NCBI GenBank assembly: GCA_904063045.1
Contig: CAJFCJ010000012.1
Coordinates: 2,428,810-2,492,809 of the forward strand
Direction: 5' to 3'
From: Dimorphilus gyrociliatus
Lineage: Eukaryota > Animalia > Annelida
DNA length: 64,000 nucleotides
Both the position numbers and the translations under genes were made by a program. Every line of letters begins with the position of its first letter. Positions within the stretch are counted from its first letter, which is position 1. Below are positions 16,678-55,466 of the stretch, piece by piece. Under the pieces are notes generated by a model. The model saw nothing but the letters and a program-made list of their open reading frames with translations, was not told the origin of the DNA and searched no databases.

Positions 16678-19600
16678 TTAGGCCATCATTGCAGCAAAGA
16701 TAGCTGCTAGAATTAGCGAGATGTTAATAAATATAGCTGCAGCTCCCGCATCACCGTCGTTGAAGAAGATGTTACATTTATCTCCTACGCAGCATTTTTC
16801 ACATGCTGTTGTACCATCAGATGTTTTCTTACAGTGTTCCTCCTTTGTTGAACTAGTACATGTTACATTTCTACATTCTCTTGTAAATGTTGTTACGCCT
16901 CCCTTTTCTAATCTAGCAACCCAGCAGGCGCCACCATTACCGCATTCTTTCAATTTGATGGTGTCAGTTTCATTGACAAAGTTGGATTGTTCCTTTCCGC
17001 AGTTTGCTTCATTTCCAGAACAAGTAAGACATTGGACTGTTCAAAGTTCATAGGAAAAAATAGGTTTTATGAGTAATGAAACAAATGATTATGTATATAT
17101 ATATATACTTACTTGCACATTGTCTGTCATTATCGTGAAGATGATACGCGCTTGAGCATTTATCACATTTAAAGCCATGAACACAAACTCCACAATTTGT
17201 TACTTGATTGGAACTGCACGAAATACATTCAGTTTTATCATCAGATAAAGTGTAGCCGGATTGACATTTGAAGCAACTTGCTTTTCCAGTAGTGTCCGCT
17301 TGTGGAGAACAATCCATGCAATTAGCGAAAGCAGATGTTGAACAGTCTGAAAGAAAATATATTTATTTTAGCCCAAAGCCTATTAACTATAAACATTAAC
17401 TATAAACATAGATGAAAATACAATCACTTTACCTTCGCAAACTCCAGCTTTCAATGTAAATCCTTTTCTACATTTAGTACATACTGATTTATCTGATGCG
17501 GAGGCGGTACAAACGTCACAATTGGCGGGACATGAAGCGCATTGTTTGAATGAACTTCCGTATAGAGCATAGTATTGTTTGCATTGCGAACAGGATACGG
17601 AACCACTGTCAACTGTACATGTTGGACAATTCTTTGGACATTCGCTACATTGTTCTGAGCTCTTTCTGTATCCTTGCATACAATTTGAGCATACAAGAAC
17701 CCCTTTATCGTCTACATCTTTACATTCTGAGCATTGATTTGGACAAGAGTAACATTTTCTATCGGATGTTTTTCTGCCATAATTACTATCACAACTGTTA
17801 ACGTCACATCCAATGACGTCATTTTCGTACGAACATTTGTTACAGTTATCAGGACAAGCTGAAATATTCATTGAAAAATTATATTCAGTAATAATTCATT
17901 CTGTTTTTTTTTCTTCAAATTTTTACCTTCACATTTTGCAGTATTAGAATTCAAAACAAATCTTCCTTTACATTTTGTACAAAGTGTACCAGTTTTATCA
18001 TCGTTCAATTTACAAGTTTCGCAATTTCCTTCGCAAGCTGTAAACATCATTTTTCATAATTATAAAAAATATACTGTTACTTATGGATTATTTGACTTAC
18101 GTAGACATTTTCCATCAGCAGTTGATGATGCGTAACCAGCAATACATGTTGCGCATGTTGTTACTCCTTTAGAATCAATGTTACAAGATGAACAAGGACT
18201 GTTACACGAAACACATTTGTTTCCAGATGTAAACAGTTTGTGTGTGCTCTTACATTCCTTACATTTTGTTTCTTTTGCAACATCATCCCAATCGCAATTT
18301 ACGCAATTACTCGGGCAAGATATACAATTCCTACTACTGTCGAAAGTGAAACCAGAAGCACATTTAGAACATCCTTGACTTCCGTCATTTTTCAAATAAC
18401 ATCTCATACAAGAATCATCGCATTTTACACATGTTCCATCGTCAGATTTTGTGATATATCCATCAATGCAACCAGTTGGAAGGCAATATGTTTGTTCGTT
18501 TTTGAAATAACACTTGGCACAGTTTGATGGACACTCATTACAATCAAAATCTGACCAATCAAGAGCATATCCTGATGTGCATTCTACACATTTCTTTACT
18601 GCTGCATTATCTTGAACACATTTATCACAATTACCTGGGCATTCTATACATTCGTAACTACTGTCAGTTAAACCATAGCTACTGGCGCAATGGAATTGTA
18701 AGCATAGAGTTTCTGTATCACTTTTAGCTCGGCATTTTCCACAATTATCAGGGCATTTTAGGCAATTCTTTTTGGTGGTAAGTTGAAGAACATGAGTGTT
18801 TTCATCACATTTTGTGCATTTGTCTACAACGTCGCCTTCTTTAATTGTACAAGAAAGACATCCATCTCCGCAAGAAACGCATGTTTTTTTATCAACACTT
18901 GGAGCGTATCCCGACTTGCAAACTTGACATTCGTTTGGTGTAATGTCGTCGGGTTTTAGTGAACAAGTGTTACAGTTGTCCATGCATCCAACACATGCTG
19001 TTCTTGCACTGTTCGTCGAAAATCCACTCTCACATTTAGAACACTCCTTTACTTTTGATACTCCTCCTCGATCAACAAAGGAACAAGTTTCACAAAAATC
19101 GTAACAACCATCACAATCCTTTTTATGTTCTTTAAAGATTTTACCAGTTGTACATGAGGTACATTCGACAAGAGTTGCACCACTATATTTGCAAGTTGGA
19201 CATGCATCAGGACATTTTCTACATTGCTTAGCAGCTGTATCCAAATTATAGTTCGATGCACAATCAGAACATTCCGTGGTGGTGAAGGTTTTGTCAACGG
19301 AACAAGTTTTACAATTATTTTCACATTCTGTGCATGTTGTTTTATCATCAGATATTAAATATCCATCGTTGCATGTATCACATTTGGAACTATCTGATGG
19401 ACAGGTTGCGCAGTTGGCCACTTGGCATGTTTGACAAGTAGTTTTTGCAGTATCAGGGAATTTAGTAGGATCTGTACATTCTTCACACTGGGCTTTATTG
19501 GCATCACACTTTTTGCAACCACCAACGGTACATTCCTCACATGTTTTAGTGGCGGATACAAATCTATATCCATCAGCACAACCAGTTGATTTACATGCTG

Positions 19601-22600
19601 CCTTGTCGTTTAGTTCGCAATCATCGCAATTAGTAGCTGTACAAGCTACGCATACACTTGCTGCACCCGCATCAATAGCTTTTCCTTTGACGCAATCTGT
19701 GCATACGTCTGGTGTACCAAAGTCACAGAGTTTACAATTGCTGCCAACAGTACATGGTACACAAGTTTGATCAAGAGCTTTATATCCATGTCCTGTAGGA
19801 CAACCAGTTGGCTTACACTTTGCCTTGTCATTTGGTTCGCAGTCGTCGCAAGGGGCTGTGCAAGCTGCGCATACACTTGCTGCACCCGCATCAATAGCTT
19901 TTCCTTTGTCGCAATCTGTGCATACGGCTGGTGTACCAAAGTCACAGAGTTTACAATTGCTGCCAACAGTACATGGTACACAAGTTTGATCAAGAGCTTT
20001 ATATCCATGTCCTGTAGGACAACCAGTTGGCTTACACTTTGCCTTGTCATTTGGTTCGCAGTCGTCGCAAGGGGCTGTGCAAACTGAGCATACGCTTGAT
20101 GCACCCGCATCAATGGCTCTTCCTTTAGCGCAAGATGTGCATACGGCTGGTGTTGCTTTATCACAGGTTGCACAGTTACTGCCTACTGTACATTGATAAC
20201 AGGTCGCATCAGCCGAATTAAACAGATATCCGGAAGAACATCCAGTTGATGTACATTTTGTCTTGTCAGTTGGTTCACAAACATCACAATTTGTTGCTAC
20301 GCAGGGTTCACAAGTACCCAAGTCTGTTACTGTATATGTAGCTGCACACACACTACATTGATTAGGATCCTTTTCTTTATAAAGACACTTTGTGCAAGGT
20401 GAAGGACAGCTTACACATTTGTTCTTCCTAGTATTTACAACATAGTTGTCATTACATACACTGCACGTTCCATCAGAATTACAAGTGGCGCAATTAGCAG
20501 GACATTTGTTACATTTGAGACCATCGCTTTGAACTTCGTATCCCGTATTGCATTTCGTACATTTTCCAAGTCCTGATAGATCAGTCTTCAAACTGCATTC
20601 AATACAGTTGCTATCAATACCACTACATGCTAAACATTCAGAGTTATCTTTATTCAAGATATATTTGTCGTCGCATTTCAAGCAACCATTTGCCCAAATT
20701 CCATCTCCAGCTTCATTCGGAACACACTTGATACAATTTGAAATAGTATCGGCACAAGCTTTACACGTTTGTAAATCGTGTTCCAAAGTTCTGCCACTTG
20801 AACATTTCTCTTCATAGCATTTTCCATTTCCATCACATTTGTCACAATTTCCGGTACAAGCGGTACAACTATCACCATTTTTACCATATTTATTCATGCA
20901 GACGATACATTTTGGACTGCCATCAACAATTTTACAATGAGCACAACCTTCTCCGCAGGCTGTAAAACAATATATTTCAATTAGGGTTTTCCTTGTTTTT
21001 TCTCTTTATTTGCTTTACAAATTGAAAATATGAAGACAAAGAAGACTTACATGAACATTGTCCACTTTCATCAACAAAACCATAGTTAACTTCGCATTCG
21101 GAAGCAAAGCATCGAGAGACGCCACTGACATCTTTACACAGTTTGCAGTTTGATGGACAACCTTTAGTTGAAAAATAACAATAATGAGAATATGTCGAAT
21201 AGAAGGCATTTGAAGCTTTTATATATTGACTAATTAATTGTTATCGCTTCATATTTATCATTTTATCGGAGATATATTTGCATGAAAATTGAACTAACCT
21301 AAACAAGTTTTATCAGAATCTTTGATGACGTATTTAGCCTCGCAGTTCGTACATTCGGCTCTGTTGTTCTTCCATTGACACGAGTTACAGTTGGATGGAC
21401 ATGCTTGACATTTTCCGTCACTGTCTTTTATATACTTGGCTTTACACAGCGTACACAATGTCGATTTACCAGATAGAACGCAAGTGAGACAGTTGGATGG
21501 ACATTGTGTGCATGTTGTTGAGTCGGCAGAAAGTTGATAATACGATTGGCATTCAGTGCATGTTGTTCCATCTGGATTGTTGGAATCTTCCGTACATTTA
21601 TTACAGAATTCTTTGCAGGCCATACAAGTTTTGTCAGCAGATCTAACAGTATAACCAACAACACATTCCGAACATTTGGCAACCCCATTATCATTAGTGC
21701 ATGTAGCGCAATTGGAAGGGCAGGATAAACATGTTCCATCACTATTTTCTACATAACGATCTCTACATTTCGAGCAAAACGTTTTCTTCGTATCTGATTT
21801 GAAAGTACATTCGAGACAAGCCGAAGGACACGAATCGCATTTCTTTGTTTCGGTGTTAAGAGCAGTTCCTTTATCACAAGACGAACAAACGAGATTATCG
21901 TTAGAATCGGCACTACAAACAGCACAATTGGAACTGCATGAAGAGCATGATTTATCAGACTTGAGACCGTATCTTTTGAAGCACTGTGAACAGACTGTAG
22001 CTGCACCACTGACTGAACAAGTTTGGCAGAAACTGGGACATTCTGAAAATGAAAAAATTTTATAATATGAAGAACAGAAGAAGAATACAAATGTGAAGAA
22101 AAACATACTCATGCATTTTTTGTCATCTGTCAAAGGAGCACTAAAATCGTAGCAGTCGTAACATACTGGTTTACTATTTGTAACGTTACAAAATCTGCAC
22201 GTACTGTCATCCGAGCAAGCTGTATTGACAAAAAATTGGTATATAAGCTTCAATAAATATTAAACGGCGAAGAAGAAAGATAGATAGATAGATTGATAAT
22301 ACAAATAATCATTTACCAATGCATTTTTGTGTTGCGGGATCTACACCATAACCATGTACGCATTGAAGGCATTTTGTGTTGTCACCAGTTCCAGTTAATT
22401 CGCATTTCATACATTTGTCTGAGCAGTCTGATATTTAAATAAGCAGTTAATGAAAATAATGATGATGAAGGAGATAATGATAAAACTCTTTTTTTTTATT
22501 GATTTGAATAATGAAAACTTACCGATACACTTTTTCTGATCAGTGGATATAACTTGATTTGTGGCGCACTTCGCACATCTCAGGTCTCTTTTTGCACAAG

Positions 22601-22697
22601 ATTCACAATTTGATACACCGTCACAGCCAGAGGTAGTTGCCGATTGCACGTATGCAACGGCAAGCAGGAAACCTGCTAATGCTAGAAATACTTTCAT
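16678..22697 (-). CDS. Array copy A: giant GPI-anchored Cys-rich (furin-like/VSP-like CxxC repeat) protein with C-terminal Ly6/uPAR domain, 1,746 aa
   Basis: Ten exons: 22523-22697, 22317-22427, 22109-22219, 21299-22042, 21051-21161, 18101-20959, 17927-18037, 17433-17858, 17113-17346, 16678-17036. All junctions are GT-AG phase 1 and the total of 5,241 nt is open. Order: signal peptide MKVFLALAGFLLAVAYVQS, then CxxC..C..GY...C modules, then QCLTC...CCVGDKCN, then hydrophobic tail AAAIFINISLILAAIFAAMMA. Confidence 0.9.
19644..20081 (-). repeat. Two near-identical 219-bp (73-aa) coding tandem units in copy A exon 6
   Basis: gccttgtcatttggttcgcagtcg occurs at 19822 and 20041, an offset of 219. 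The unit is CTAPCDDCEPNDKAKCKPTGCPTGHGYKALDQTCVPCTVGSNCKLCDFGTP...GKAIDAGAASVC. Confidence 0.95.
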
Positions 22698-23140: not shown

Positions 23141-23180
23141 ATTCATTCATTCATTCATTCATTCATTCATGCATTCATTG
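23141..23180. repeat. (TTCA)n microsatellite
   Basis: attcattcattcattcattcattcattcat read directly. Other short SSRs occur in the window, e.g. (TAAT)n ~7098-7120, (TCT)n/(CT)n ~23572-23606 and (TA)n ~61038-61058. Confidence 0.9.
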
Positions 23181-27759: not shown

Positions 27760-30700
27760 TTAGGCCGTCAAAGCAGCAACCACAGCTGATAGAATTAGCG
27801 AAACATTAATAAATATTGCCGCAGCTCCCGCGTCACCATCGTTAAAGAAGATGTTACATTTATCTCCAACACAACATTTTTCACAAACCGTTGTACCATC
27901 CGATGTTTTCTGACAGTGTTCCTCCTTTGTTGAACTACTACATGTCACGTTTTTACATTCTCTTGTAAATGTTGTTACACCTTCCTTTTCTAATCTGGCA
28001 ACCCAACAGGCACCTCCTTTCCCGCATTCTTTTAATTTGATTGTATCAGTTTCATTGACAAAATTGGATTGTTCCTTTCCACAGTTTGCTTCATTTCCAG
28101 AACAAGTAAGACATTGGACTGTTCAAAATTCATGAGAAAAACCAGTCATATGAAGAATAATGGGATTGAATATGTATATATACTTACTTGCACATTGTCT
28201 GTCATTATCGTGAAGATGATACGCGCTTGAGCATTTATCACATTTAAAGCCATGAACACAAACTCCACAATTGGTTACTTGATTGGAACTGCACGAAATA
28301 CATTCAGTTTTATTTTCAGATAAAGTGTAGCCGGATTGACATTTGAAGCAACTTGCTTTTCCAGCAGTGTCCGCTTGTGGAGAACAATCCATGCAATTAG
28401 CGAAAGCAGATGTTGAACAATCTAATAAAACCAAAATACATTGTACCTCATTTAAGTGGTTGATGACTTTTTAAGATAATAAATAATTTATAACCTTCGC
28501 AAGCTCCTGCTATAATTGAAAATCCTTTTTTACATTTGGTACATACTGATTTATCGGATGAGGTTGCTGAGCAAACATCGCAATTAGGGGGACAAAAAGT
28601 GCACTGCTTAAAGGAATCGCCGAACAAAGCATAGTACTGTCTGCATTTCGTACAAGATATTGAACCTCTATCGATTGCACAATTTGGACAATTCTTTGGA
28701 CATTCGCTACATTGTTCTGAGCTCTTTCTGTATCCTTGCATACAATTTGAGCATACAAGAACCCCTTTATCGTCTACATCTTTACATTCTGAGCATTGAT
28801 TTGGACAAGAGTAACATTTTCTATCGGATGTTTTTCTGCCATAATTACTATCACAACTGTTAACGTCACATCCAATGACGTCATTTTCGTACGAACATTT
28901 GTTACAGTTATCAGGACAAGCTGAAATATTCATTGAAAAATTATATTCAGTAATAATTCATTCTGTTTTTTTTTCTTCAAATTTTTACCTTCACATTTTG
29001 CAGTATTAGAATTCAAAACAAATCTTCCTTTACATTTTGTACAAAGTGTACCAGTTTTATCATCGTTCAATTTACAAGTTACGCAATTTCCTTCGCAAGC
29101 TGTAAACATCATTTTTCAAAATTATAAAAAATATACTGTTACTTATGGATTATTTGACTTACGTAGACATTTTCCATCAGCAGTTGATGATGCGTAACCA
29201 GCAATACATGTTGCGCATGTTGTTACTCCTTTAGAATCAATGTTACAAGATGAACAAGGACTGTTACACGAAACACATTTGTTTCCAGATGTAAACAGTT
29301 TGTGTGTGCTCTTACATTCCTTACATTTTGTTTCTTTTGCAACATCATCCCAATCGCAATTTACGCAATTACTCGGGCAAGATATACAATTCCTACTACT
29401 GTCGAAAGTGAAACCAGAAGAACATTTAGAACATCCTTGACTTCCGTCATTTTTCAAATAACATCTCATACAAGAATCATCGCATTTTACACATGTTCCA
29501 TCGTCAGATTTTGTGATATATCCATCAATGCAACCAGTTGGAAGGCAATATGTTTGTCCGTTTTTGAAATAACACTTGTCACAGTTTGATGGACAAGCAT
29601 TACAATCAAAATCTGACCAATCAAGAGCATATCCTGATGTGCATTCTACACATTTCTTTACTGCTGCATTATCTTGAACACATTTATCACAATTACCTGG
29701 GCATTGTGTACATTCGTAACTACTGTCAGTTAAACCATAGCTACTGGCGCAATGGAATTGTAAGCATAGAGTTTCTGTATCACTTTTAGCTCGGCATTTT
29801 CCACAATTATCAGGGCATTTTAGGCAAGTCTTTTTGGTGGTAAGTTGAAGAACATGAGTGTTTTCATCACATTTTGTGCATTTGTCTACAACGTCGCCTT
29901 CTTTAATTGTACAAGAAAGACATCCATCTCCGCAAGAAACGCATGTTTTTTTATCAACACTTGGAGCGTATCCCGACTTGCAAACTTGACATTCGTTTGC
30001 TGTAATGTCGTCGGGTTTTAGTGAACAAGTGTTACAGTTGTCCATGCATCCAACACATGCTGTTCTTGCACTGTTCGTCGAAAATCCACTGTTACATTTG
30101 GAACACTCATTTACTTTTGATGCTCCTCCTCGATCAACAAGGGAACAAGTTTCACAATTTGTTTTACAACCAACACAACTCTTTTTATCATCATCTAAGA
30201 TTTTACCAGTTGGACATGAGGTACATTCGACAAGAGTTGCACCATTATGTTTGCAAGTTAGACATGAAGAAGGACATGGTTCACATTTGTTATCACCTGT
30301 ATTGAAATTAGCGTCCGATGCACAACCAGAACAGAGTGGTATAAAATCTGGTTTCCATGTACATGTTTTACAGTTATCTTCACATTTTGTGCATGTTGTT
30401 TTATCATCAGATATTAAATATCCATCATTGCATGTATCACATTTGGAGCTATCTGATGAGCAGTCTTTGCAGTTAGCCACTTGGCATGTTTTACAAGTTT
30501 TACTAGCTGTTATGAAGTTAAATCCAGCATCGCAACCAGTTGATTTACACTTCGTCTTGTCGTTAAGTTCGCAATCATTGCAATTAGCAACTGTGCAAGC
30601 TACGCAGTTGCCTGAATCGATAGCTTTTCCTTTATCGCAATCTGTGCAAGTTCCAAGAGTACCGGTAACACATAATTTACAATCAGTTGCCGTGCATGGT

Positions 30701-33700: not shown

Positions 33701-34107
33701 AGATATAGACATAAGAAGAGATTCGGAATAAAAGAGAAATGTTTACCGAAGCACGTTTGAGTATCGGGATTGACAGCATAACCAATAAAACATTCAAGGC
33801 ATTTTGTAGCATCACCAGAACCACTTAAACTGCATTTCATACAGTTTGCCGTACAGTCTGAAATGACGATAGAGAATGAATGGAAATAGAATTAATGACA
33901 GAGAAACGAGGATAAAGATAATGAAAACATACCAATGCATTTCTTCTGATTACTGGATAAAACCTGATTGGAGGCGCACATTGAACACCTTAATCCTCTA
34001 TTGCTGCAACTTTCACAATTCGCTATGTCTTTACAGGCAGATGTGGTAGCGGATTGCAAGTGTTTAGCAGTAAGCCAAATTGTTATTAAAAACAGATAAA
34101 GTTTCAT
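27760..34107 (-). CDS. Array copy B: giant GPI-anchored Cys-rich + Ly6 protein (~1,740 aa), apparently intact
   Basis: Same 10-exon structure as copy A: E1 33933-34107, E4 32335-33078 (744 nt, translated by hand and open), E5 32087-32197, E6 29163-31994 (944 codons), E8 28495-28920 and E10 27760-28108. It ends CCVGDKCN...LILSAVVAALTA*. Confidence 0.88.
30598..31227 (-). repeat. Three 210-bp (70-aa) coding tandem units in copy B exon 6
   Basis: attatatgcagttccagcattgcaaccagt occurs at 30721 and 30931, an offset of 210. The unit is CTAAxCNDCVLTNKAECKSTGCNAGTAYNAGSKECEPCTGTDCKLCVTGTLGTCTDCDKGKAIDGxxCVA. Units 2 and 3 are near-identical; unit 1 is more diverged. Confidence 0.95.
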
Positions 34108-40100: not shown

Positions 40101-42978
40101 AAGATGTGCATTCATTTGGCGAATCAGCATAACATTTTTTACAACTACTAGCAGCAGTACATCTCACACAGGTTTTATCAGAAGATTTAAATGAATATCC
40201 ACTAGGACAACCAGTTGGTTTGCATGCATTCTTGTTATATTCTTCGCAATCTTCGCAATTGCCTGTACAAGTTACGCATACATTTCCTGCTCCGAAGTCA
40301 ATGGCTCTCCCTCTATGGCAAGATGTGCATACAGCTGGTGTAGCTTTATCACAGGTTGCACAGTTACTGGCAGGTATACATTGATAACAAGTTTCATCAA
40401 AGAAGCTGAATAAAAATCCGAAAGCACAGCCGGCTGCAGTACATTTAGTTATGTCTATTGGGTTACAAACATCACAATTTTGTGCGTTGCAGGGTACACA
40501 AGTACAAAATTCTGTTAGTGTATATGTAGCTGCACACACACTACATTGATTAGGATCTTTTTCATTATAGAAACACTTTGTGCAAGGAGAAGGACAGCTT
40601 ACACATTTGTTTTTCCTAGTATTTATCACGTAGTTTTCATTGCAGACACGACACGTTCCATCAGAATTACATTTGTCGCAATTATCAGGACACTTGTTAC
40701 ATCTAAGACCATCGCTTTGAACTCCGTATCCCGTATTGCATTTCGTACAGTGGCCAAGTCCCGATAGATCAGTCTTTAAACTGCATTCAATACAGTTGCT
40801 ATCAATACCACTACATGCTAAACATTCAGAGTTATCTTTATTCAAGATATATTTGTCACGGCATTTCAAGCAACCATTTGTCCAAATTCCATCTCCAGCT
40901 TCATTAGGAACGCATTTAATACAATTCGAAATAGTATCGGCACAAGCTTGACACGTTTGTAAATCGTGTAGCAAAGTTCTGCCACTCGAACATTTCTCTT
41001 CATAGCATTTTCCATTTCCATCACATTTGTCACAATTTCCGGTACAAGCGGTACAACTATCACCATTTTTACCATATTTATTCATGCAGACGATACATTT
41101 TGGACTGCCATCAACAATTTTACAATGAGCACAACCTTCTCCGCAGGCTGTAAAACAATATATTTCAATTAGGGTTTTCCTTGTTTTTTCTCTTTATTTG
41201 CTTTACAAATTGAAAATATGAAGACAAAGAAGACTTACATGAACATTGTCCACTTTCATCAACAAATCCATAGTTAACTTCACATTCGGAAGCATAACAT
41301 CGAGAGACGCCATTAACATCTTTACATAATTTGCAGTTTAACGGACAAACTATAATTGAGAAAGGCAAACAATGAGAATATGTAAGATTAAATGAGATTT
41401 ACAAGTGATGTCTACAAAATTATCAATCACTTATCTGTATTACCTAAACAAGTTTTATCAAAATCTTTGATGACGTATTTGGCTTCGCAGTTCGTACATT
41501 CGGCTCTGTTGTTCTTCCATTCACAAGAGTTACAGTTGGATGGACATGCTTGGCATTTTCCGTCACTATTTTTTATATACCTGTCTTTACACAACGTACA
41601 CAACGTCGATTTACCAGATAGAATGCAAGTAAGACAGTTGGATGGACACTGTGTGCATGGTGTAGAGCCAAAAGAAAGTTGATAATAGGATTGGCATTCA
41701 GTGCAGGTTGTGTCGAGTTTATCATAGTCCTCTATACATTTATTACAGGAACGGTGGCAAGATATACAATTTTTGTCAGTAGATCTAATAGTATAACCAA
41801 GGTCACATTTCGAACATTTCGGAACTCCATTATCATTTGTGCATATGGCACAATTGGAAGGGCACGGTAGACAGATTCCATCAGTATTTTTTACATAGCC
41901 GTCGCTACATTTCCAGCAAAACGTCTTCTTAGTATCTGACTTGAAAGTGCATTCAAGACAAGCGGAAGGACACGAATCGCATTTCTTTGTTTCGATATTA
42001 AGAGCAGTTCCTTTATCGCAAGATGAACAAACTAGATTATTGTTAGAATCGGCACCACAAACAGCACAATTGGAACTACATGAAGTGCAGGATTTATCAG
42101 ACCTGAGACCGTATCTTTTGAAGCATTGTGAACAGACTGTATCTGAACCACTGACTGAACAAATTTGGCAGAAACTGGGACATTCTGGAGATGAAAAAAT
42201 ATTTTAAAATGAAGAAAATAAAGAAGGTGTTTGTATTAAAAAACCATACTCAAGCATTTGTTGTCAGCTGTCAAAGGAGCGCTATAATCTTAGCAATCGT
42301 GGCAAACTGGTTTACCTTGCTCAATTTTGCAGAGTTTGCATGAATAATCTTCGGAACAAGCTATAAAGAATTAAAATGAATACGTAGTTTTAGTTTCTGA
42401 TGAAATTATTTGATTTGCTTTTCATTTCAACTTTGGAATTAAATGCTTAACTTCTATCGACATAAATGACTGTATGGCATAAGAAAATGGAACTCTCTGT
42501 TCTTTGAAATGAGTAATGCAAGAGCAAATATGCATGAAGAACTTCTTTGATAAAATACTAATATCATGAAAGATATTGATGTAGGAAGAGATTAAGAATA
42601 AAAGACAAAATTTTACCAAAGCATGTGTTACTGTCGGGATCTAGACCATAACCAGCAGAACATTCAAGGCATTTTGTGGCATCACCAGATCCAGTCAAAC
42701 TGCATTTCATACAGTTTGCGGTACAGTCTGAAATGAAGAAAAAGATTGAATGGAAAATAAAATTAATGATAGAGAAATGAGGATAGAAATAATGAAAACA
42801 TACCAATGCATTTTTTTTGATCAGTTGATAAAACTTGATTAGAGGCGCACTGCAAACACCTCAAGTCTTTATCGCTACAAATTTGACAATTCGCAATATC
42901 TTCACAGCCAGATGTTGTTGCGAATTGCAGATTTGTAGCCTTTAGCCAAATTATTATTAAAAATATATAAAATTTCAT
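36924..42978 (-). CDS. Array copy C: full-length structure but with an in-frame TAA in exon 3 (recent pseudogene, or expressed by exon skipping)
   Basis: E1 starts at 42978 (MKFYIFLIIIW). E3 (42250-42360) has TGC-TAA-GAT at 42292-42290 where the other copies have TGC-TAC-GAx. E4 41444-42184 (741 nt), E6 38307-41147 (947 codons) and E7-E10 are all open with canonical splice sites. Confidence 0.8.
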
Positions 42979-44049
42979 TTTGAACTTCCTTTAAGTTTTA
43001 CAATTGAAAAAGTGTTTTTGGCAAGTGGAAACTTTCACAGCTACTTTTGTCTCTTCTTTTGCGTCGTTTCAGGAATCTATGTTAATGAATCGTGGCTTGC
43101 GCTAGGTTATATAGGAGATATAGAGTTTTGACAAAAGCAAAAGAAAAACTAAAAAAAATAACCATTTATAATATCCATAACATTTGAATAGTTTAAAAGT
43201 AATTAATCACTGTTTGTTGATTTTAGCATTTCGATCAAATGGTAATTTTCCTTCAAATACTTTTATCAAACAACATCAGAGAGAATGACAGTTGTTTTAG
43301 AAGGATTTTTCATTAATTTTTCTTTAAACAAAATAACTTTTTCCTTAGTTTTTGTTTCAATTATCTGTCAACGCACATCCTTTTTCTTATATAATTGTCA
43401 ATTGAATGAAATTTCCAGGTTTCATTTAACAAATTCAACTTTCTGTTTATATCTGACATCAGAAACTTTGCTGTGGCATTAAAAATATTTATCTAATGGG
43501 AAAATAGAAGAAGTCTTATAGACTTGAATGGTCTAATCAGAATAAAAATCATGTATTCTTTTGTTAGATTTATTCAAATAATTAGTATGAAAACTATAGT
43601 GTGTAAAATGTTTACAGCTTTGCTATTAAACTCCATTCTTAAAGCTACTAAGGATTTTCATTTATTAAGATATAGAAGAAGCGAGAGGGTTTTCACAATT
43701 GATCTTTATGTTAATGGCATATGGTTGTATTATCGCTTTGTAATGCTAAGCTTTCTTTTTCAACATTATATAAATTTATCTAAGCTTAACTGATATATTA
43801 TTCTAACAAAAGAGATTGTTTAGTCGTGATTTTGTAAGTTATAAATGCTTATAGGATTATTACTACTGCTATACAGATAACTTTATATCATCAGCAGATC
43901 TAGTTAAAAGTACAGTGAATAAGCTATTGGTTAAACAAAAGTAAAGGCAATTTGAAGGATTGTTAAAAACAAAAGTAGCCTCTTTTAATAAATCAGGAGT
44001 TTGAAGCTCCTTCAAATATCCATTGACACATACTTCACATTTTGAACTA

Positions 44050-44810
44050 TCTTATTTGCAGATTGCGCAATTCATTACTTTCAAAGTTTGTCAAGTAGTT
44101 TTTGCAGTGTCAGGGAATTCAACACCACTTGCAAATTGTTCTTTTGTTCGAAATCAGGGCAGTTAGTATACAGTAGATATCACGTATTGCATTTCGTACA
44201 ATTTCCAAGTCCCGATAGATCAGTTTTTAAACCGCATTCATTACAGTTGATATCAATACGACTGCATTCTGAACATTCAGAGTTATCTTTATTCAAAAAA
44301 TATTTTTCATTTGGAACACACTTAATACAATTCGCACCGTTGCAAATTTGCACAGTTGCTTATGTTTGAAATTATAAGATATTCGGGAAAATTTAAAGAC
44401 AAACCTCAATTTTAGAAATACGTTTAAAAGAAGAGAAACTGGTATAATATGATTTTTTTTATTGGAAGAATGTCTCAAAAAGAAATATTAATATATCTCT
44501 ATTTTTCATTTTGAACTATGAAATTATATGCTGAACTTCTATCTACATAAATGACTGTATGACATAAGAAAATGGAACTTTCTGTTCTTGAAAATGAGTG
44601 AAGCAATAATGATTTTGCATGATAAATTTCTTTGATATCATTTAATGAAAGATGTAGATTTAACTTGATTAGAGGCGCAAATTAAACACCTTAAGTCTTT
44701 TTTGCTACAAATGTGATAGTTTGATATATCGTCACAGGCAGTTGTAGTTGCAGATTGCATGTGTTTAGCAGTAAGCCAAATTGTTACTACTAACAGATAT
44801 AATTTCAGAT
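44050..44810 (-). pseudogene. Array remnant psi2: exon 1 with destroyed start codon plus scattered exon-6 fragments
   Basis: 44650-44808 translates as LKLYLLVVTIWLTAKHMQSATTTACDDISNYHICSKKDLRCLICASNQV, with the ATG disrupted (caatATctGaaa versus caatATGaaa in B and D) and a Cys->Tyr change. 44185-44330 matches CIKCVPNE..NKDNSEC..KTDLSGLG and 44085-44115 matches PDTAKTTC. Confidence 0.8.
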
Positions 44811-45769
44811 ATTGGCGGTATATAAAGCCTATATAAAAAACTTGATTCAAACTGAAAGTAAAAGGTTAAATATAGAATTTTGGGAGAAAGTAATAAATAT
44901 TAAAGAAATAACCACTAATGCTAAGTAACAAAACATTCATTTCATTTGAATAGTTTGAAAGAAATTATTGATTTTGTTGTTGGTTTTAACAATTCAATCA
45001 ATTACCAATTTCTCTGGCTATTTTTTATGAAAGATTGTAAATGAGATTGATAGTGGCTTTACAAAGATTAATAGATATTTTTGCTTTGAGCAGAGCAAAT
45101 TTTTTGTTAGTTATCTGGCAAACCCAATTAGTTTTATAACACAATGAAATTTCCAGCTTTTATTTAGTAAACTTTGCTATAACATTTAAAATATTTATCT
45201 AATAGCAAAGTAGAGAAAGTCACCTTGACTTGATAGCGACCACTGGCCTTTAAAGAATTAAATTATCTATTCTTTGTTAGATTTAATCAAACAATTACTA
45301 TAAAAAGTATACTCTGCGGAGCTTTCGCAGCTTTACTATTAAACTTAATTCTTCAAACTATAAGGGATTTTCGATTATTTTATTTCAGACATTCTATAAA
45401 TATTGAAGACTTGCAAAGGTTTTCTCTGATGATTTTCATGTTTATTCCATTAGGTTTGTATTAACGCTATTGTTAATGCTATGACTTTTTTGAATCGATA
45501 TTGCACCTAAGCCTTGCTAAAGAATATTCCAACAAGAATGTTTGTTTAATCGTGGTTGTGTTATAATTAATATTATAATCATGATGTTATTCATCAGTAG
45601 GTCTAGTTGAGATCTGATGAGTTTTGATCAAAAATGATAGAGAGAATAGTTATTTATATAAACAAAATGTATACTTCCGAATATTTAGATGCATAGTGCA
45701 TCATTTCTCATTGAAGATTGAACAGAAAGTAAAATTAATGATAGAAAAATGAGGATAGAAATAATGAAA

Positions 45770-45930
45770 TATTATTGTGACCAGTAGATAAAACTTGATT
45801 AGAGGCGCACATTGAACACTTTAATCCTCTATTACTGCAACTTTCGCAATTCGCTATATCTTCGCAACCAGATGTGGGTACGGACTGCAAGTGCTTAGCA
45901 ATAAACCTAATTGTTACTACAAAGAGATAT
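45770..45930 (-). pseudogene. Array remnant psi3: isolated exon-1 fragment
   Basis: The minus strand reads ..AKHLQSVPTSGCEDIANCESCSNRGLKCSMCASNQVLST.., close to copy B exon 1. It has no ATG and no downstream exons. Confidence 0.75.
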
Positions 45931-46030
45931 GACGGATTATATTAAACTATAGTGAATGAATGGTGACATCAATCAATTGACAATTTCTCAGAATATCATT
46001 TCTCATTATCTGAATTGTTTATTGAGTATC

Positions 46031-49000
46031 TTAGGCCATCATAGCAGCAACAACACCTAATAAAACTAGCGAGATATTAATAAATATAGCTGCAGCTCCC
46101 GCAATACCATCGTTAAAGAAGATGTTGCATTTATCTCCTACGCAGCATTTTTCACATGCTTTTGTACCATCAGATGCTTTCTTGCAATGTTCCTCCACTG
46201 TTGAACTACTACATGTCACATTTCTACATTCTCTTGTAAATGTTGTTACGCCTCCCTTTTCTAATCTAGAAACCCAACAGGCGCCACCATTGCCACATTC
46301 TTTTAATTTGATTGTATCAGTTTCATTGACAAAGTTGGATTGTTCCTTTCCGCAGTTTTCTTCATTTCCAGAACAAGTAAGACATTTCACTGTTCATAAT
46401 TCATGAGAAAAACAAGTCATATAAAGAATAATGGGATTGATTATGTATAGATACTTACTTGCGCATTGTCTGTCATTATCATAAAGATGATACTCGCTTA
46501 AACATTTATCACATTTGAATCCATGAACACAAACTCCACAATCGGTTACTTGATTGGAACTGCACGAAATACATTCAGTTTTCTCATCAGATAAAGCGTA
46601 ACCGGATTGACACTTGAAGCAGCTTGCTTTTCCAGTACTATCCACTTGTGGAGAACAATCCATGCAATTAGCGAAAGCAGATGTTGAACAATCTAATAAA
46701 ATCAAAATACATTGTACATCATTTAATTGGTTGATGACTTTTTAAGATAATAGATATTTATAACCTTCGCAAGCTCCTGCTCTAATTGAAAATCCTTTTT
46801 TACATTTAGTACATACTGATTTATCGGATGAAGTTGCTGAGCAAACATCGCAATTAGGGGGACAAAAAGTGCACTGCTTAAAAGAATCTCCGAACAAAGC
46901 ATAGTACTGTCTGCATTTCGTACAAGTTATTGAACCTTTCTCAATTGCACAGTTCGGACAATTTCTCGGACATTCGCTACATTGTTCTGTACTTTTCCTA
47001 AATCCTTGCGTACAAGTTGAGCATACAAGAACTCCTTTATCGTCAACATCTTCACAAACCGAGCATTGATTTGGACAAGCGTAACATTTTCTGTCCGATG
47101 TTTTTCTGCCAAATTTATCATCACAACTGTTGACGTCGCAACCAATGACGCCATTTTGAATCGAACATTTTCTACAGTGATTCGGACAAGCTGAAATGTT
47201 GTGAATTGAATTGAATTGTACAGGAAAATTCCTTTCGTAGAAATTACCTCTACAGTTTCCAACATCCAAATTCAGAATAAACCTTGGTTTACATTTGGTA
47301 CAAAGTGTACCAGTTTTAGCATCATTTAATTTACAAGTCACACAATTCCCATGACAAGCTATAAAAACAATTTTTTTTTCATATACACAAAGAAAGATAA
47401 TAAGAATCACTTTTCAACAAGAATATAAATGATTTATTTCACTTACGTTGACATTTTCCATCAGCAGTTGATGAAGCGTAACCAGCATTACATGTTGCGC
47501 ATGTTGTTACTCCTGTGGCATCAATGTTACAGGATGCACAAGGACTAGTACATGACACACATTTGTTTCCAGATGTAAACAGTTTGTGTGTGCTCTTACA
47601 TTCCTTACATTTTATTTCTTTTGCAACATCATCCCAATCGCATTTTACGCAATTACTCGGACAAGATACACAATTCCTACTAATGTCGAAAGTGAAACCA
47701 GAAGAACATTTAGAACATCCTTGACTTCCGTCATTTTTCAAATAACATCTCATACAAGAATCATCGCATTTTACACAAGTTCCATCGTCAGATTTAGTGA
47801 TATATCCATCAATACAACCAGTTGGAAGACAATATGTTTGTCCGTTTTTAAAGTAACACTTGTTACAATTTGTAGGACAAGCATTACAATCGAAATCAGA
47901 CCAGTCAAGAGCATATCCTGCATTGCATTCTACGCATTTCTTTACTGCTGAATTATCTTGAATACATTTATCGCAATTACTTGGGCATTGTGTGCATTCA
48001 TAACTGCTGTCGGTTAAACCATAACTACTGTCGCAATGAAATTGTAAGCATAGAGTTTCTGTATCACTTTTAGCTCGGCATTTTCCACAATTATCAGGAC
48101 ATTTCAGGCAAGTCTTTTTCGTGGTTAGTTGAAGAACATGGGTGTTTTCATTACATTTTGTGCATTTGTCTACAACATCGCCTTCTTTAATTGTACAAGA
48201 AAGACATCCATCTCCGCAAGAAACGCATGTTGTTTTATCAAAGCTTGGAGCGTATCCCGACTTGCAAACTTGACATTCGTTTGGTGAATTATCGGCTTTT
48301 AACGAACAAGTGTTACAGTTAGTCATACATTTAACACAGGATGTTTTCGCACTGTGAACCGAATATCCACTGTTACATTTGGAGCACTCCAACACTTTTG
48401 ATACTCCTCCTTGATCAACAAAGGAACAAGTTTCACAATTTCCTGGACAAGAAACACAACTCTTTTTATCTTCAGCAAAGATTTTACCAGTTGTACATGA
48501 GCTACATTCGACAAGAGTTGCACCAGTATGTTTGCAAGTTGGACATGAAGAAGGACATGTTCTACATTGCTTAGCACCTGTATCGAAATTAGCGTTCGAA
48601 GCACAACCGGAACATTGCGTTATAAAGGTTTTGTCAACTGAACAAGTTTTACAATTATTTTCACATTTTGTGCATGATGTTTTGTCATCAGATATTAAAT
48701 ATCCGTCGGCACATATATCACATTTGGAGCTATCTGATTGGCAATTTAGGCAGTTGGCTACTTGGCAGGTTTGACAAGTAGTTTTTGCAGTATCAGGGAA
48801 TTTAGTAGGATTTGTACATTCTTCACACTGGGCTTTATTGGCATCACACTTTTTGCAACCTGTAACAGCACATTGCTCACATGTTTTAGTGGCGGTTACA
48901 AATCTATATCCAGCAGCACAACCAGTTGATTTACATGTGGCCTTGTCGTTTATTTCGCAGTCATCACAGTTAATAGCTGTACAAGCTACGCAATTAGTTC

Positions 49001-52000
49001 CATCAATGGCTTTTCCTGTAGGGCAATCGATACATTGCATAAGAGTATTAACGTCACAAAGTTTACAATCATTTGCAGCACAAACATCACACGTTTCACG
49101 TATAGGATTATAAACACTTCCAGCGTTGCATCCAGTTGATTTACATTTGTATATGTCTTTACAATCATTACAATAAGTTGCAAAACATGTTTCACAACGT
49201 TGAGTTAAAGGATTATAAACACTTCCAGCAATGCATCCAGTTGATTTACACTTGTACTTATCTCGTAGTTCACAATCATTGCAGTTTTGAGTTGCACAAG
49301 CTACACAATCGTCTCCATCAATAGTAAATCCTTTAGTGCAATCTGTGCATCGTCCCGGTGTGTATGGGTCACAGGCTTTACAGTTATTGCCAATACAAGA
49401 AACACAAGCGGCATCACTAGCTCTAAAAAAATACCCACTTTTACAACCAAATGATGTACATTTTGATACATCGGTTGATTCACAAAAATCACAATTTTGT
49501 GCCGTGCAGGGTACACAAGTTCCCAATTCTGTTAGTGTAAATGTAGCTGCACACACACTACATTGATTAGGATCTTTTTCATTATAGAAACACTTTGTGC
49601 AAGGTGAAGGACAGCTTAAACATGTGTTCTTCTTAGTATTTACAACATAGTTTTCATTGCAGACACTACATGTTCCATCAGAATTACAATTGGCACAATT
49701 AGCAGGACATTTGTTACATTTGAGACCATCGCTTTGAATTTCGTATCCATAATTGCATTTCGTACATTTTCCAACTCCTGATAGATCAGTCTTCAAACTG
49801 CATTCAATACAGTTGCTATCAATACCATTACATGCTAAACATTCAGAGTTATCTTTATTCAAGATATATTTGTCACGGCATTTCAAGCAACCATTTGTCC
49901 AAATTCCATCTCCAGCTTCATTAGGAACGCATTTAATACAATTCGAAATAGTATCGGCACAAGCTTTACACGTTTGTAAATCGTGTAGCAAAGTTCTGCC
50001 ACTCGAACATTTCTCTTCATAGCATTTTCCATTTCCATCACATTTGTCACAATTTCCGGTACAAGCGGTACAACTATCACCATTTTTACCATATTTATTC
50101 ATGCAGACGATACATTTTGGACTGCCATCAACAATTTTACAATGAGCACAACCTTCTCCGCAGGCTGTAAAACAATATATTTCAATTAGGGTTTTCCTTG
50201 TTTTTTCTCTTTATTTGCTTTACAAATTGAAAATATGAAGACAAAGAAGACTTACATGAACATTGTCCACTTTCATCAACAAATCCATAGTTAACTTCAC
50301 ATTCGGAAGCATAACATCGAGAGACGCCATTAACATCTTTACATAATTTGCAGTTTAACGGACAAACTATAATTGAGAAAGGCAAACAATGAGAATATGT
50401 AAGATTAAATGAGATTTACAAGTGATGTCTACAAAATTATCAATCACTTATCTGTATTACCTAAACAAGTTTTATCAAAATCTTTGATGACGTATTTGGC
50501 TTCGCAGTTCGTACATTCGGCTCTGTTGTTCTTCCATTCACAAGAGTTACAGTTGGATGGACATGCTTGGCATTTTCCGTCACTATTTTTTATATACCTG
50601 TCTTTACACAACGTACACAACGTCGATTTACCAGATAGAATGCAAGTAAGACAGTTGGATGGACACTGTGTGCATGGTGTTGAGCCAAAAGAAAGTTGAA
50701 AATACGGTTGGCATTCAGTGCATGTTGTTCCATCTGGATTGTTTGAATCTTCTGTACATTTATTACAGAATTCTTTGCAGGTCATACAAGTTTTGTCAGC
50801 AGATCTAACAGTATAACCAACAACACATTCCGAACATTTGGTAACTCCATTATCATTAGTGCATGTAGCGCAATTGGAAGGGCAGGATAGACATGTTCCA
50901 TCACTATTTTCTACATAACGATCTCTACATTTCGAGCAAAACGTCTTCTTAGTATCTGATTTGAAAGTACATTCGAGACAAGCCGAAGGACACGAATCGC
51001 ATTTCTTTGTTTCAGTGTTAAGAGCAGTTCCTTTATCGCAAGATGAACAAACTAGATTATCTTCGGAATCTGCACTACAAACAGCACAATTGGAAGTGCA
51101 CGAAGAGCATGATTTGTCAGACTTGAGACCGTATCTTTTGAAGCATTGTGAACATACTGTATCTGAACCACTGACAGAACAAATTTGGCAGAAACTGGGA
51201 CATTCTGAAAAACAAGAAAATATTATATGAAGAATATAGAGAAAGTGTTTGTATTCAAAAAACCCACTGATGCACTTGTTGTCATCTGTCAAAGGAGCAC
51301 TATACTCGTAGCAATCGTAGCAAACTGGTTTTCGATGTGTAATATTACAGAATTTGCATGAATTATCTTCGGAACAGGCTGTAAATAATTAGAGTAAAAA
51401 TGAAATTCTATGGCAGGAGTAAAGCAATCTAAAAAATCCAAATTTTCCTTGCGTATTGAGCTCGTATTTTTACTATAATTTTTGTTGGAAATTATAAGAA
51501 ATTCCGGGAAAAGTTGAAGGTGAAATGAGATGTATAGGAAAAAATGTGTATATAACTGTCTTCAGCTTGAGTACTTGTTATAATGAGTTTAAAGGGAAAA
51601 AAACGTGTAAGATATGATGATCATCGGAAGAATGTTTCAAAGTAAAGTATTAAATATATCGTTCAGTTTTTTAAATAATGAAATTATATTCTGATAAATT
51701 GAAGAAATTGCTTAAATTTCATTTATCTGCATAATTGACTTTTTTCCATGAAAAATAAAACCAGCTGTCTCTTAAGTTGAGTAGTACAATACTTATTTGG
51801 TATGACTGATATTCTTTCATGAAGCATATACAGACTAAAATGAAAAAAACCTTAAGAAAAATAGATAAACATTTACCAAAGCAGGTTTTGGAGTCGGGAT
51901 CTACAGCATAACCAGCAGAGCATGCAACGCATTGTGTTTTATCACCAGACCTAATCAAACTGCATTTTATACAGTTTGCGGTACAATCTGAAATTAAGAA

Positions 52001-52308
52001 AAACATTAGCATCACCAGAACCACTTAAACTGCATTTCATACAGTTTGCCGTACAGTCTGAAATGACGATAGAGAATGAATGGAAAATAGAATTAATGGC
52101 AAAGAAATGAGGATAGAAATATTGAAAACATACCAATACATTTCTTTTGATCGATAGATAAAACTTGATTAGAGGCGCATGACAGACACCTCAAGTCTTT
52201 TTTCCCGCAATTTTGACAATTTGGTACAGTGTGGCAGCCAGATGTGGTTGCGCATTGCATGTGTTTAGCAGCAAGGCAAATTGTTACTAAAAACAGAAAT
52301 AATTTCAT
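46031..52308 (-). CDS. Array copy D: giant GPI-anchored Cys-rich + Ly6 protein (~1,700 aa), intact if the distal exon-2 acceptor is used
   Basis: E1 starts at 52308 (MKLFLFLVTICLAAKHMQC). E2 is 51877-51987 (111 nt), preceded by an out-of-frame half-duplicate at 52005-52057. E3 is open, E4 lies within ORF 50444-51292, E6 is 47447-50164 (906 codons), and E7-E10 are open, ending CCVGDKCN...LVLLGVVAAMMA*. Confidence 0.85.
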
Positions 52309-53233: not shown

Positions 53234-55466
53234 TTAGACTTTCATAGCAGTAAAAATAGCTGCTAGAATTAGCGTAATGTTCATAAATATACCCTCAGCT
53301 CCGGCATCGCCATTGTTAAAGAATATATTACATTTATCTCCTACGCAGCATTTTTCACATGCTTTTGTACCATCAGATGTTTTCTTGCAGTGCTCCTCCA
53401 CTGTTGAACTACTACATGTCACATTTCTACATTCTCTTGTGAATGTTGTTATGCCTCCCTTTTCTAATCTAGAAACCCAACAGGCACCGCCGTTACCTCA
53501 TTCTTTCAATTTGAATGTATCAGTTTCATTGACCAAATTGGATTGCTTCTTTCCGCAATTAGCTTCATTTCCAGAACAAGTAAGACATTTGACTGTTCAG
53601 AGTTCATAAAAGCATGGGTTATAAAAGTATTGAAAAAAGTGATTTTGCATATATGTTTACCTGAGCATTGAGTGTCATTTTCGTAAAGGAGAATAATGGT
53701 TGTTTTAGAGGAATATTAAATATTATGTTGTTGGCTTTTCACGACATACACAATGTCATTTTGTTCAAAGTAAAACGAGATTTTTTTAGTTTTTTTTACT
53801 TACCTGACAACGCAAATGATTTTCATAAACAGTTGTTACTCGAATGAAATTTTCTGGTTTTTTTTTTAAGAAATTCAACTCTTTGTTTATGCCTGACATC
53901 ATAACTTTTTATCTAATGAGAAAATAAAGAAAGACGTCTCGATTTGATACCAAACACAAGTACTAAATCATTTATTATTCGCAATACTCAATGGACTTGT
54001 TACTTCCTTGTAAAGCTATACAAGATGAAGGTTACGCAGCTTCATTATTAATCTAATTACTTGAAGAGGTTAGTGATTTACAATCGTTTCCTCAAAGATT
54101 GCCTACACATGTTGAAATCCTATGAAGGTTTCCGCTAACGATGTCTATAGCTGTGTCTATTGATTGTTTTATGTGATTTGTATTGCTATGCTTGTTTTGA
54201 TAATGCTCAACACAAGACGAAAGAATATTCAACACAAACTGTTTGTTTATTATATCGCTGTGGAGATTACAAATGCAGAAAATTAAGTGCTTATTGTTTA
54301 ATTCATCATGTAAAATTACAAATTGCCAGATGACAACAAATGCCTGAGTATGTTTTTTTTATGTTAACACTCTTTTTAAATGAAAAAATGAAGATCATTT
54401 TCTTAATGATAATATTTTTTCATTTTCAAGAATGTCCCAGTTTCTGCCAAACTAATCTGATAAATTATGCTCTTTAGGCAGTTCCAATTGTGCTGAAATG
54501 TTTTGAATTAAATTGAATTGAATTGTAGAGGAAGTTTCCTTTCATAGAAATTACCTCTACAATTTCCTACATCGAAATTCAGAATAAACCTTGGTTTACA
54601 TTCAGTACAAAGTGTGCCAGTTTTAGCATCATTCAATTGACAAGTTAGACAAGGGTTGGGGAAACCTTGGAGCGAATCCAGACTTGCAAACTTGACATTT
54701 ATTTGGTGAATTATCGACTTTCAATGAACATGTTAAGCAGTTAGCCATACATGCAACACATGGTGTTTTCGCATTGTGCAACGAAAATTCACTGTTACAC
54801 CTGGAACACACCAATACTTTTGATGGTCCTCCTTGAACAGCAATTAAGCAAGTTTCACAATTTGGGGGACATGTTCTACATATCTTGGCTACTTCATCGA
54901 AATTAGTATTCAATTCACAACCGGAACATTGCGTTGTGAAGGTTTTCTCAACTGAACAAGTTTTACAATTATTTGTACATTTTGTGCATGACGTTTTATC
55001 ATCAGATATTGAATATCCATCATTGCATGTATCACATTTTGAACTATCTGATTGGCAGTAGACTACTTGGAGGCTTTGACAAATAGTTTTTGTAGCATCC
55101 GGAAATTCGGCAATATTTATTCACTCTTCGCATGGCAGTAAGGGCCTGTACAAGCTATCCAGTTGGCTCCTTCTAAAGCTTTTCCTATATGGCATTCTGA
55201 GCATTGTCCAAGAGCGCCAATAGCACAAGCTGTACAACCAAATGTGATGCAATGATGACAGGCATCAGTGCCATCAAATACACTTCCATAGTAACAAGCA
55301 GTTGGTTTACATTTGGATTTTTCGTTGAGTATGCAATCTTTGTAGTTAGTAGCTGTACAGACAACGCAATCTGTTCCATCAAGGCTTTTCCTATATCGCA
55401 ATCTGTACATTGTCCTGGTGACTCCTGGGTCACAAGCTTTACAGTCATTGACGGTACAAGCAACAC
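53234..55466 (-). pseudogene. Array remnant psi4: rearranged, 5'-truncated copy
   Basis: E10 has TGC->TGA at 53500-53498. Only the end of E9 remains. E7 is fused to mid-E6 at ~54650-54660 through a GGGTTGGGGAAAC filler. Frameshifted E6 pieces run to ~55466, and an inverted E3/intron/E4 piece lies at 54327-54495. Confidence 0.88.

Follow-up and report, generated by a model that had tools for sequence, protein, structure and literature searches.

The window analysed here, a stretch of 64,000 nucleotides of AT-rich animal DNA from the annelid Dimorphilus gyrociliatus (assembly GCA_904063045.1, contig CAJFCJ010000012.1, positions 2,428,810 to 2,492,809 of the forward strand), carries a tandem array of very large genes for cysteine-rich proteins, and the question raised by this locus is what kind of surface protein such genes encode. 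Judged from design, we regard it as probable, if not strongly so, that the array encodes coat proteins in which a cysteine rod is attached by a glycosylphosphatidylinositol (GPI) anchor, that these proteins are abundant and almost unglycosylated, and that they come closest in design to the surface antigens of Paramecium. The product would be a long, rigid, disulfide-dense rod with almost no glycosylation, held on the outer leaflet of the membrane by the GPI anchor, and a domain of the Ly6/uPAR (LU) type would serve as its membrane-proximal base, forming a cassette with the GPI signal on the terminal exon. Such molecules might together cover an exposed cell surface, probably an epidermal or ciliated one, with an abundant coat that protects it or resists adhesion.

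Copies were located by querying gene A against the window with blastn, and beyond gene A three more full-length copies and scattered fragments were found, nearly all on the minus strand. The splicing of gene A was tested by placing contigs from four public runs on positions 16698-22697. Gene A is transcribed and fully spliced in the contigs of run X4, which span all nine introns with ends CT..AC, that is GT-AG on the minus strand, and five of the joints (including 22219/22317) were also seen in the RNA run X1. Every intron of gene A is in phase 1, and the coding sequence of 5241 nt gives a protein of 1746 amino acids (aa) with 276 cysteines and 124 CxxC motifs. The models of genes B, C and D were obtained by transferring all splice sites of gene A through a four-way genomic alignment, the RNA joints being those of gene A only. 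A preliminary description of this DNA, made from the letters alone, had listed four full-length genes of ten exons on the minus strand; their coordinates proved exact, but only three of the four are intact, gene C being interrupted by a stop codon.

16678..22697, minus strand: gene A, an intact gene whose 10 exons encode 1746 aa; signal peptide, 44 modules of six cysteines, LU-type domain and GPI-type tail.
22697-22523, 22427-22317, 22219-22109, 22042-21299 and 21161-21051, minus strand: exons 1-5 of gene A, from RNA contig joints.
20959-18101, 18037-17927, 17858-17433, 17346-17113 and 17036-16678, minus strand: exons 6-10 of gene A, from RNA contig joints.
18101..20959, minus strand: exon 6 of gene A, which specifies about 26 modules in 953 codons.
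16678..17036, minus strand: exon 10 of gene A, 12-cysteine LU domain ending CCxxxxCN, followed by DGDAGAAA and a 17-aa hydrophobic C-terminus.
27760..34107, minus strand: gene B, an intact gene whose 10 exons encode 1737 aa; exon borders transferred from A.
36924..42978, minus strand: gene C, with 1739 codons in 10 exons and a single TAA in frame; exon borders transferred from A.
46031..52308, minus strand: gene D, an intact gene whose 10 exons encode 1699 aa; exon borders transferred from A.

The TAA of gene C, at 42290-42292, stands where genes A, B and D have Tyr119 and is its sole in-frame stop, and gene C is probably a recent pseudogene or else a null allele. From the translations, each gene is predicted to specify a precursor of about 180 kDa consisting of a cleavable signal peptide, 44 modules, a three-finger domain and a GPI-type signal. 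The preliminary description had already read this architecture correctly as a signal peptide, a rod resembling furin-like repeats and variant-specific surface proteins (VSPs), a Ly6-type domain and a GPI-type tail; its estimate of about 40 modules becomes 44 by cysteine count, and its statement that the proteins have no protease, kinase, transmembrane or cytoplasmic domain agreed with our inspection of the spliced translations, in which no protease, kinase or transmembrane-plus-cytoplasmic part is present.

The rod is built on a strict cysteine period, C-x3-C-x2-C-x(5-13)-C-x2-C-x~12-C-x2, which is repeated 44 times before the 12-cysteine domain begins. One module comprises six cysteines in about 37 aa, each of the 111-nt exons 2, 3, 5 and 7 encodes exactly one module, and 261 of the 269 ungapped cysteine columns are kept in all four copies. 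The spacing C-x2-C-x3-C-x2-C-x(5-13)-C-x2-C presumably resembles the cysteine-rich motif of proprotein convertases, which we take as a lead only. An alignment of 39 four-module blocks from the window and from relatives was used as input for an AlphaFold2 (AF2) model of four modules, which came out as a stack of beta-hairpins with a mean predicted local distance difference test score (pLDDT) of 95.5. In the ESM Atlas it was matched best by a ciliate cluster of the 'furin-like repeat/VSP' kind (template modelling score, TM, 0.69; root-mean-square deviation 2.8 Å over 126 residues), followed by cysteine-rich regions of proprotein convertases (PCSK6-type clusters at TM 0.45-0.55), and Atlas clusters with Furin-like_2, GF_recep_IV or VSP annotation matched the model at TM 0.45-0.69. 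The best global superposition among Swiss-Prot models was Giardia VSP4A1 (TM 0.49), and among solved chains it was the Fu1-Fu2 region of R-spondin (Z 3.9-4.2), with SCARF1, HER2 and the cysteine-rich domain of EphA2 as further matches. The modules are thus confidently predicted to have a furin-like/VSP-like fold.

Pfam scans covered exons 4, 6, 8 and 10 and seven full-length relatives; on exon 6 the VSP model (PF03302) scored 18.3 bits, under its gathering cut-off of 31.4, with 17-19.6 bits in the relatives, and no Furin-like, Furin-like_2 or GF_recep_IV match was obtained in exons 4, 6 and 8 at E up to 0.01. A phmmer search of exon 6 against PDB sequences gave no match, and with a module profile the only PDB chain under E 0.001 was Chlamydomonas Mst1 (8tx1), a marginal match at 6.4e-4. 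The rods of genes A-D contain 0-1 N-x-S/T sequons where 19-21 are expected from composition, and two conserved sequons both lie within the LU domain, a pattern common to most of the relatives (examined in P0028, P0030, P0031, P0032, P0009 and P0005).

These shape matches also bear on another explanation, in which the product is a ligand-binding co-receptor or scavenger whose furin-like repeats bind a partner, as in R-spondins, SCARF1 and the cysteine-rich domains of convertases, while the LU domain modulates a membrane receptor in cis. The likeness of the model to R-spondin Fu1-Fu2, SCARF1, HER2, the EphA2 cysteine-rich domain and PCSK6 is compatible with such a role, as is the fact that LU proteins commonly modulate receptors (PMC13719153). 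The Z-scores of these matches are weak, however (4.2 or less), and 44 near-uniform modules, a very high RNA depth and the depletion of sequons would suit a bulk structural role better, and we therefore consider a co-receptor quite unlikely.

The cysteine spacing in exon 10 is C-x2-C-x6-C-x18-C-x5-C-x16-C-x4-C-x8-C-x9-C-x2-CC-x4-CN (12 cysteines), which is the framework of the LU superfamily (8-10 or more cysteines, ending CC-x4-C-N). When 16 family members were aligned, the CC-x4-CN ending and eight invariant positions (seven cysteines and one glycine) were found, the CC and the next cysteine being invariant throughout. Foldseek searches of the predicted domain against PDB and Swiss-Prot models returned three-finger proteins in nearly all of the leading places (E about 0.04, TM 0.35-0.52, with probabilities as high as 1.00), among them GPIHBP1, LYPD6B, TGF-beta RII, PSCA, TEX101, uPAR, SP-10, snake toxins, Bouncer and Boudin, and a three-finger beta fold is accordingly predicted with moderate confidence. 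A profile of the domain, searched against 1.84 billion representatives, retrieved 98 proteins (P0037-P0134), most of those inspected being small signal-peptide proteins or the C-termini of cysteine-rich proteins with a hydrophobic GPI-type tail; when 52 of them were scanned with Pfam, QVR (3), CD59 (2), UPAR_LY6 (1) and UPAR_LY6_2 (1) were matched. Against PDB sequences the same profile gave only non-significant matches (BMPR2, E 0.36; LYPD6, E 1.5). Because the cysteine framework, the AF2/Foldseek matches and profile relatives that themselves match LU models in Pfam all point the same way, we place the predicted exon-10 domain in the Ly6/uPAR three-finger superfamily.

The protein ends with ...NDGDAGAAA, 17 hydrophobic residues (IFINISLILAAIFAAMMA) and the stop codon, with no cytoplasmic residues. 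This tail, which by inspection has the form of a GPI C-terminal signal, is kept in genes B, C and D and in relatives, and in both Dimorphilus subfamilies (see below) the LU domain and the tail share a single terminal exon. Among the profile matches, which come mostly from metatranscriptomes, an LU domain with GPI-type tail also terminates some Kringle, EGF, trypsin or ShK proteins. Given the single terminal exon and this recurrence behind other domains, the arrangement suggests that the LU-plus-GPI exon may behave as a mobile or reusable anchoring cassette.

How these proteins compare with known systems was then considered. Paramecium surface antigens are large GPI-anchored proteins of a multigene family with a cysteine periodicity throughout; their ends are conserved and the centre less so, tandem repeats occur in some of them, and their function is still unknown (PMC9788069). 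The worm genes share with the ciliate antigens their size, the GPI-type anchoring, the cysteine periodicity, the conserved ends and the variable centre of tandem repeats, and the predicted shape of their modules is likewise closest to that of the ciliate VSP/furin-like cluster; they thus have the layout of ciliate antigens, which is a likeness of design rather than demonstrated homology. The ciliate antigens differ in having no LU domain, in belonging to unicellular hosts and in their mutually exclusive, switchable expression, whereas the worm genes have an LU base, phase-1 introns between modules and ordinary animal neighbours. Giardia VSPs resemble the worm proteins in the CxxC-rich extracellular rod, in the weak Pfam match and in the superposition of VSP4A1. 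They end, however, in a transmembrane helix and a CRGKA tail, neither of which is present in the worm proteins, and the Pfam score of the latter lies under the cut-off. The likeness to Giardia VSPs and ciliate surface antigens that had been proposed from the sequence therefore holds at the level of design and fold matches.

Among animal proteins, the furin-like repeats of PCSK5/6 and R-spondins have the predicted module fold (the FU fold), whereas the worm rod has no protease, thrombospondin or other partner domain and 44 repeats against 2-22. The GPI-anchored Ly6/uPAR proteins (GPIHBP1, LYPD6B, PSCA, CD59, Drosophila Quiver and Boudin) share the framework of 10+2 cysteines, the CCxxxxCN ending and the predicted fold of the terminal domain, and the GPI-type tail of the worm proteins follows directly after that domain. 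Known LU proteins are, however, either small, with 1-4 such domains, or have the domain N-terminal to a kinase or a G protein-coupled receptor (GPCR), whereas the worm protein has one LU domain at the base of a rod of 1,600 aa. Chlamydomonas Mst1, the marginal profile match, is alike in being a cysteine-rich repeat protein described as mastigoneme-like. Mst1 holds other domain types and forms filaments, and it is not known to have an LU domain or a GPI signal.

Published non-standard LU architectures include Kunitz, C1q, FreD, Ig, MAM, TRX, permease and 7TM partners, and a cysteine rod is absent among them (PMC13719153); that survey, which dates from 2026 and covers the LU architectures of 387 invertebrate genomes, lists only 'LU, RK' for annelids and no fusion with a CxxC rod in any phylum. 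VSP-like genes are described in one other animal, the myxozoan Sphaerospora (PMC11792419), and a literature search on Dimorphilus and related terms found nothing on a cysteine-rod LU family. The impression that no described animal family combines a CxxC rod with an LU domain was thus borne out by the survey, and the design appears to be undescribed in animals.

That the coat would be an abundant one is a matter of expression. Single X4 contigs on gene A have k-mer depths of 7,700-25,000, and the preliminary description had named the absence of expression of every copy as fatal to its view; spliced gene A RNA is present in X4. Several points weigh against the proposed coat or call for caution. 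The depth, which suggests that gene A mRNA is very abundant, is uncalibrated. The signal peptide and the GPI-type tail were assigned by inspection of the sequence. The AF2 model of the LU domain has six strands at a moderate pLDDT of 65, and no Pfam LU model (UPAR_LY6, QVR, CD59, Toxin_TOLIP) matches exon 10 or the seven relatives at E up to 1. The greatest variability lies in the middle of the rod and not at its membrane-distal tip, which a simple barrier role leaves unexplained. Finally, the coat role is argued from design and would be compatible with a specific ligand.

The same very high RNA depth could be expected of a reproductive or extracellular-structure protein, for example a recognition molecule of the egg or sperm surface or a component of cocoon, cuticle or adhesive gland, in which the LU domain would play the part that it has in Bouncer, SPACA4, TEX101 or SP-10. 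The fold matches of the domain include TEX101, SP-10 and Bouncer, and rapid tandem duplication with repeat turnover is common in reproductive proteins. The GPI signal speaks against a purely secreted matrix protein, however, and purifying selection over most of the length speaks against the explanation in general, which we consider unlikely.

Selection was examined by comparing the four copies. Pairwise amino-acid identity is 76-84% and the synonymous divergence (dS) is 0.27-0.44, and the copies are under purifying selection, the whole-gene ratio of nonsynonymous to synonymous divergence (dN/dS, omega; Nei-Gojobori) being 0.30-0.38 for every pair. In the centre of exon 6 identity falls to 55-75% in each pair, with dS near 1 (saturated) and omega 0.3-0.7, and alignment columns 976-1125 alone reach an omega near or above 1, in some pairs. 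In this centre the copies carry tandem expansions of a two-module unit, each copy its own, as was found with Tandem Repeats Finder (TRF) and, for gene A, with blastn self-hits.

19578..20153, minus strand: variable core of A, 219 nt (73 aa, two modules) x 2.6, 92% matches; TRF and blastn self-hits.
30523..31233, minus strand: variable core of B, 210 nt (70 aa) x 3.4, 90% matches; TRF.
39916..40330, minus strand: variable core of C, 219 nt x 1.9, 85% matches; TRF.

Outside the core, no difference separates genes C and D in some 500 aligned columns (100% identity) in the region of intron 4, exon 5 and intron 5, genes A and B are 99-100% identical across much of the 3' half, and gene B is a mosaic with a 5' end closest to D and an A-like 3' half. 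Given that the closest partner switches along the gene, the flanks have been homogenised by gene conversion or unequal exchange, and the variable core is mainly old divergence that escaped this homogenisation, with repeat instability in addition. The centres of the copies change as two-module repeats of 70-73 aa expand and contract, their flanks are kept alike by conversion, and copies also decay, as may be seen in the nonsense codon of gene C and in five clusters of fragments.

The preliminary description had counted four remnants; decayed fragments are indeed present, but they form five clusters, spanning 66-93% identity to the genes, and one piece is inverted.

35194..35900, minus strand: remnant 1, pieces of exons 10, 4 and 3; 76-93% identity to the genes.
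44013..44808, minus strand: remnant 2, exon 6 pieces and an exon-1 copy.
45714..45930, minus strand: remnant 3, exon-1-like piece, immediately 3' of gene D.
53234..53688, minus strand: remnant 4, exon 10 with a portion of the intron before it; its LU domain is interrupted by an in-frame stop, and identity to C is 90%.
54323..55467, minus strand: remnant 5, pieces of exons 6 and 7, 66-93% identity; 54323-54495 inverted.

The remnants were considered as donors for gene conversion and rejected as recent ones, because the highest identity to any gene is 93%.

A family of several genes in which each copy has its own core and some copies have decayed, laid out as the variable antigens of Paramecium are, could also be a variable-surface or recognition system, in which members would be expressed singly per cell or individual and the core would diversify for immune recognition, allorecognition or evasion. 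The omega near or above 1 in columns 976-1125 is in line with this, and so is a comparison between populations. Between gene A and the contigs of X1, whose source population is another one, 14 codons differ. All 4 changes at aa 219-471 are silent and all 10 at aa 514-793 (19834-20672) alter the amino acid, two pairs of the latter lying at equivalent places in the C-T-V-G-S-N-C loop of consecutive repeats. The differences in the core come from short contigs within the repeat, however, and could be due to diversifying selection or to contigs of another repeat unit or paralogue laid in the wrong place. Further evidence against this explanation is the whole-gene omega, the omega of 0.3-0.7 in the core with its saturated dS, the presence of just three intact copies in the array, and remnants too distant from the genes to be recent donors. 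Expression is probably not confined to one copy either, as besides the spliced mRNA of A the bulk run X4 contains 72% of the sampled words of D exon 6; since these words cannot derive from A at such divergence, gene D is probably expressed too. We therefore regard a variable-surface or recognition system as fairly unlikely, and the earlier claim of birth-and-death turnover under diversifying pressure is retained as to turnover (remnants, the nonsense codon in C) but not as to the pressure, given a dN/dS of 0.30-0.38.

The analogy with ciliates could be carried further, to an animal counterpart of antigen switching in which the 17 or more genes would be expressed one or a few at a time per cell, stage or individual, and in which conversion and changes of the core repeat would make coat variants selected by predators, microbes or mates. 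This we consider very unlikely; if it were true, the core differences between the two populations (10 replacement, 0 silent) would be its first trace.

The region is rich in repeats, and 38 of the 667 X4 contigs fit two places, which raises the possibility that the copies are an artefact, due to haplotypes assembled wrongly or to collapsed repeats. From copy to copy, however, the introns and the intergenic content are different, a predicted Dispatched-like gene lies between A and B, and several DNA runs hold 41-86% of the D exon-6 words. Mis-assembled haplotypes in particular were rejected because copies with a dS of 0.27-0.44 and an amino-acid identity of 76-84% are far too divergent, and an artefact is extremely improbable.

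The locus is not unique: at least 13 further paralogues, about 29% identical, are found in D. gyrociliatus, and a protein of the same design occurs in another annelid. The paralogues in the annotation are the following.

DgyrCDS832, 833, 836 and 837: on one 3.6-Mb contig, 836 and 837 adjoining.
DgyrCDS14431, 14434, 14465, 14539, 14640, 14781 and 14891.
DgyrCDS9669 and 9671.

Their plan is the same (signal peptide, about 90 CxxC motifs, LU domain and hydrophobic tail), some annotated models being without the tail. DgyrCDS836 (plus strand) and DgyrCDS837 (minus strand) lie tail to tail at 3.33-3.36 Mb of CAJFCJ010000001.1 (L003:10001-23378), and this locus is a second cluster of the family with another orientation pattern; its members belong to a second subfamily, DgyrCDS832-837.

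A homologue search with the exon-6 query (938 aa) covered candidates of up to about 1,640 aa, a length below that of the window's own full-length proteins. A protein of 905 aa (P0004) with the same design is present in Paralvinella palmiformis, an annelid of hydrothermal vents, and several environmental transcript contigs share the design of rod and LU domain. When P0004 was used as query, no named orthologue in other phyla was found, a negative result that is limited by the word prefilter of the search. In the Paralvinella gene (L004:10001-19762) nearly every module of 33-41 aa has an exon to itself, and about three exons share the LU region. Given that the Paralvinella modules are mostly encoded one per exon, Dimorphilus exon 6 looks like the product of intron loss in a compact genome. 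Judged by these sequence relationships, the tandem array is part of a lineage-expanded annelid gene family.

A cysteine-rod coat design of the ciliate and Giardia type would thus now be found in a free-living animal, where it is joined to an LU domain, spliced, apparently very abundant as RNA and encoded by well over a dozen genes. This suggests that the design may be a general solution for exposed ciliated surfaces and not a peculiarity of protists. It also adds to the Ly6/uPAR superfamily an architecture that is absent from the latest survey, which missed it because curated models do not recognise the divergent LU domain. Dimorphilus is culturable, tiny and compact in genome, and the function of such a coat, still unknown in Paramecium, would be genetically testable in an animal.

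Several other genes of the window are of ordinary animal type. Between genes A and B, at 24047-26592 on the minus strand, two long open frames match Patched and the sterol-sensing domain (E about 1e-5), and a Dispatched/Patched-like gene is, by these matches, located within the array. Around the array we found the following.

3250-3963, plus strand: PUL-domain fragment.
10964-11600, plus strand: small stand-alone Ly6-type gene of about three exons, about 5 kb from gene A and on the opposite strand.
12026-13087, minus strand: 353-aa open reading frame with no Pfam match.
14847-15806, plus strand: innexin (Pfam E 1.8e-81).
59364-60173, minus strand: NeuroD-type bHLH (HLH plus Neuro_bHLH).

Given the innexin, NeuroD-type and PUL-domain neighbours, the array lies in a normal animal chromosome context. 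A horizontal origin from a protist, or contamination, was considered and rejected on the basis of the phase-1 spliceosomal introns at module borders and of the innexin, Dispatched-like and NeuroD-like neighbours, and further on the basis of the Paralvinella gene with one module per exon. The small Ly6-type gene at 10964-11600 encodes a signal peptide (MKILGQILLVLSMVAIG) followed by ECYRCREQ... and, later, by ...CVECCRGDLCN.

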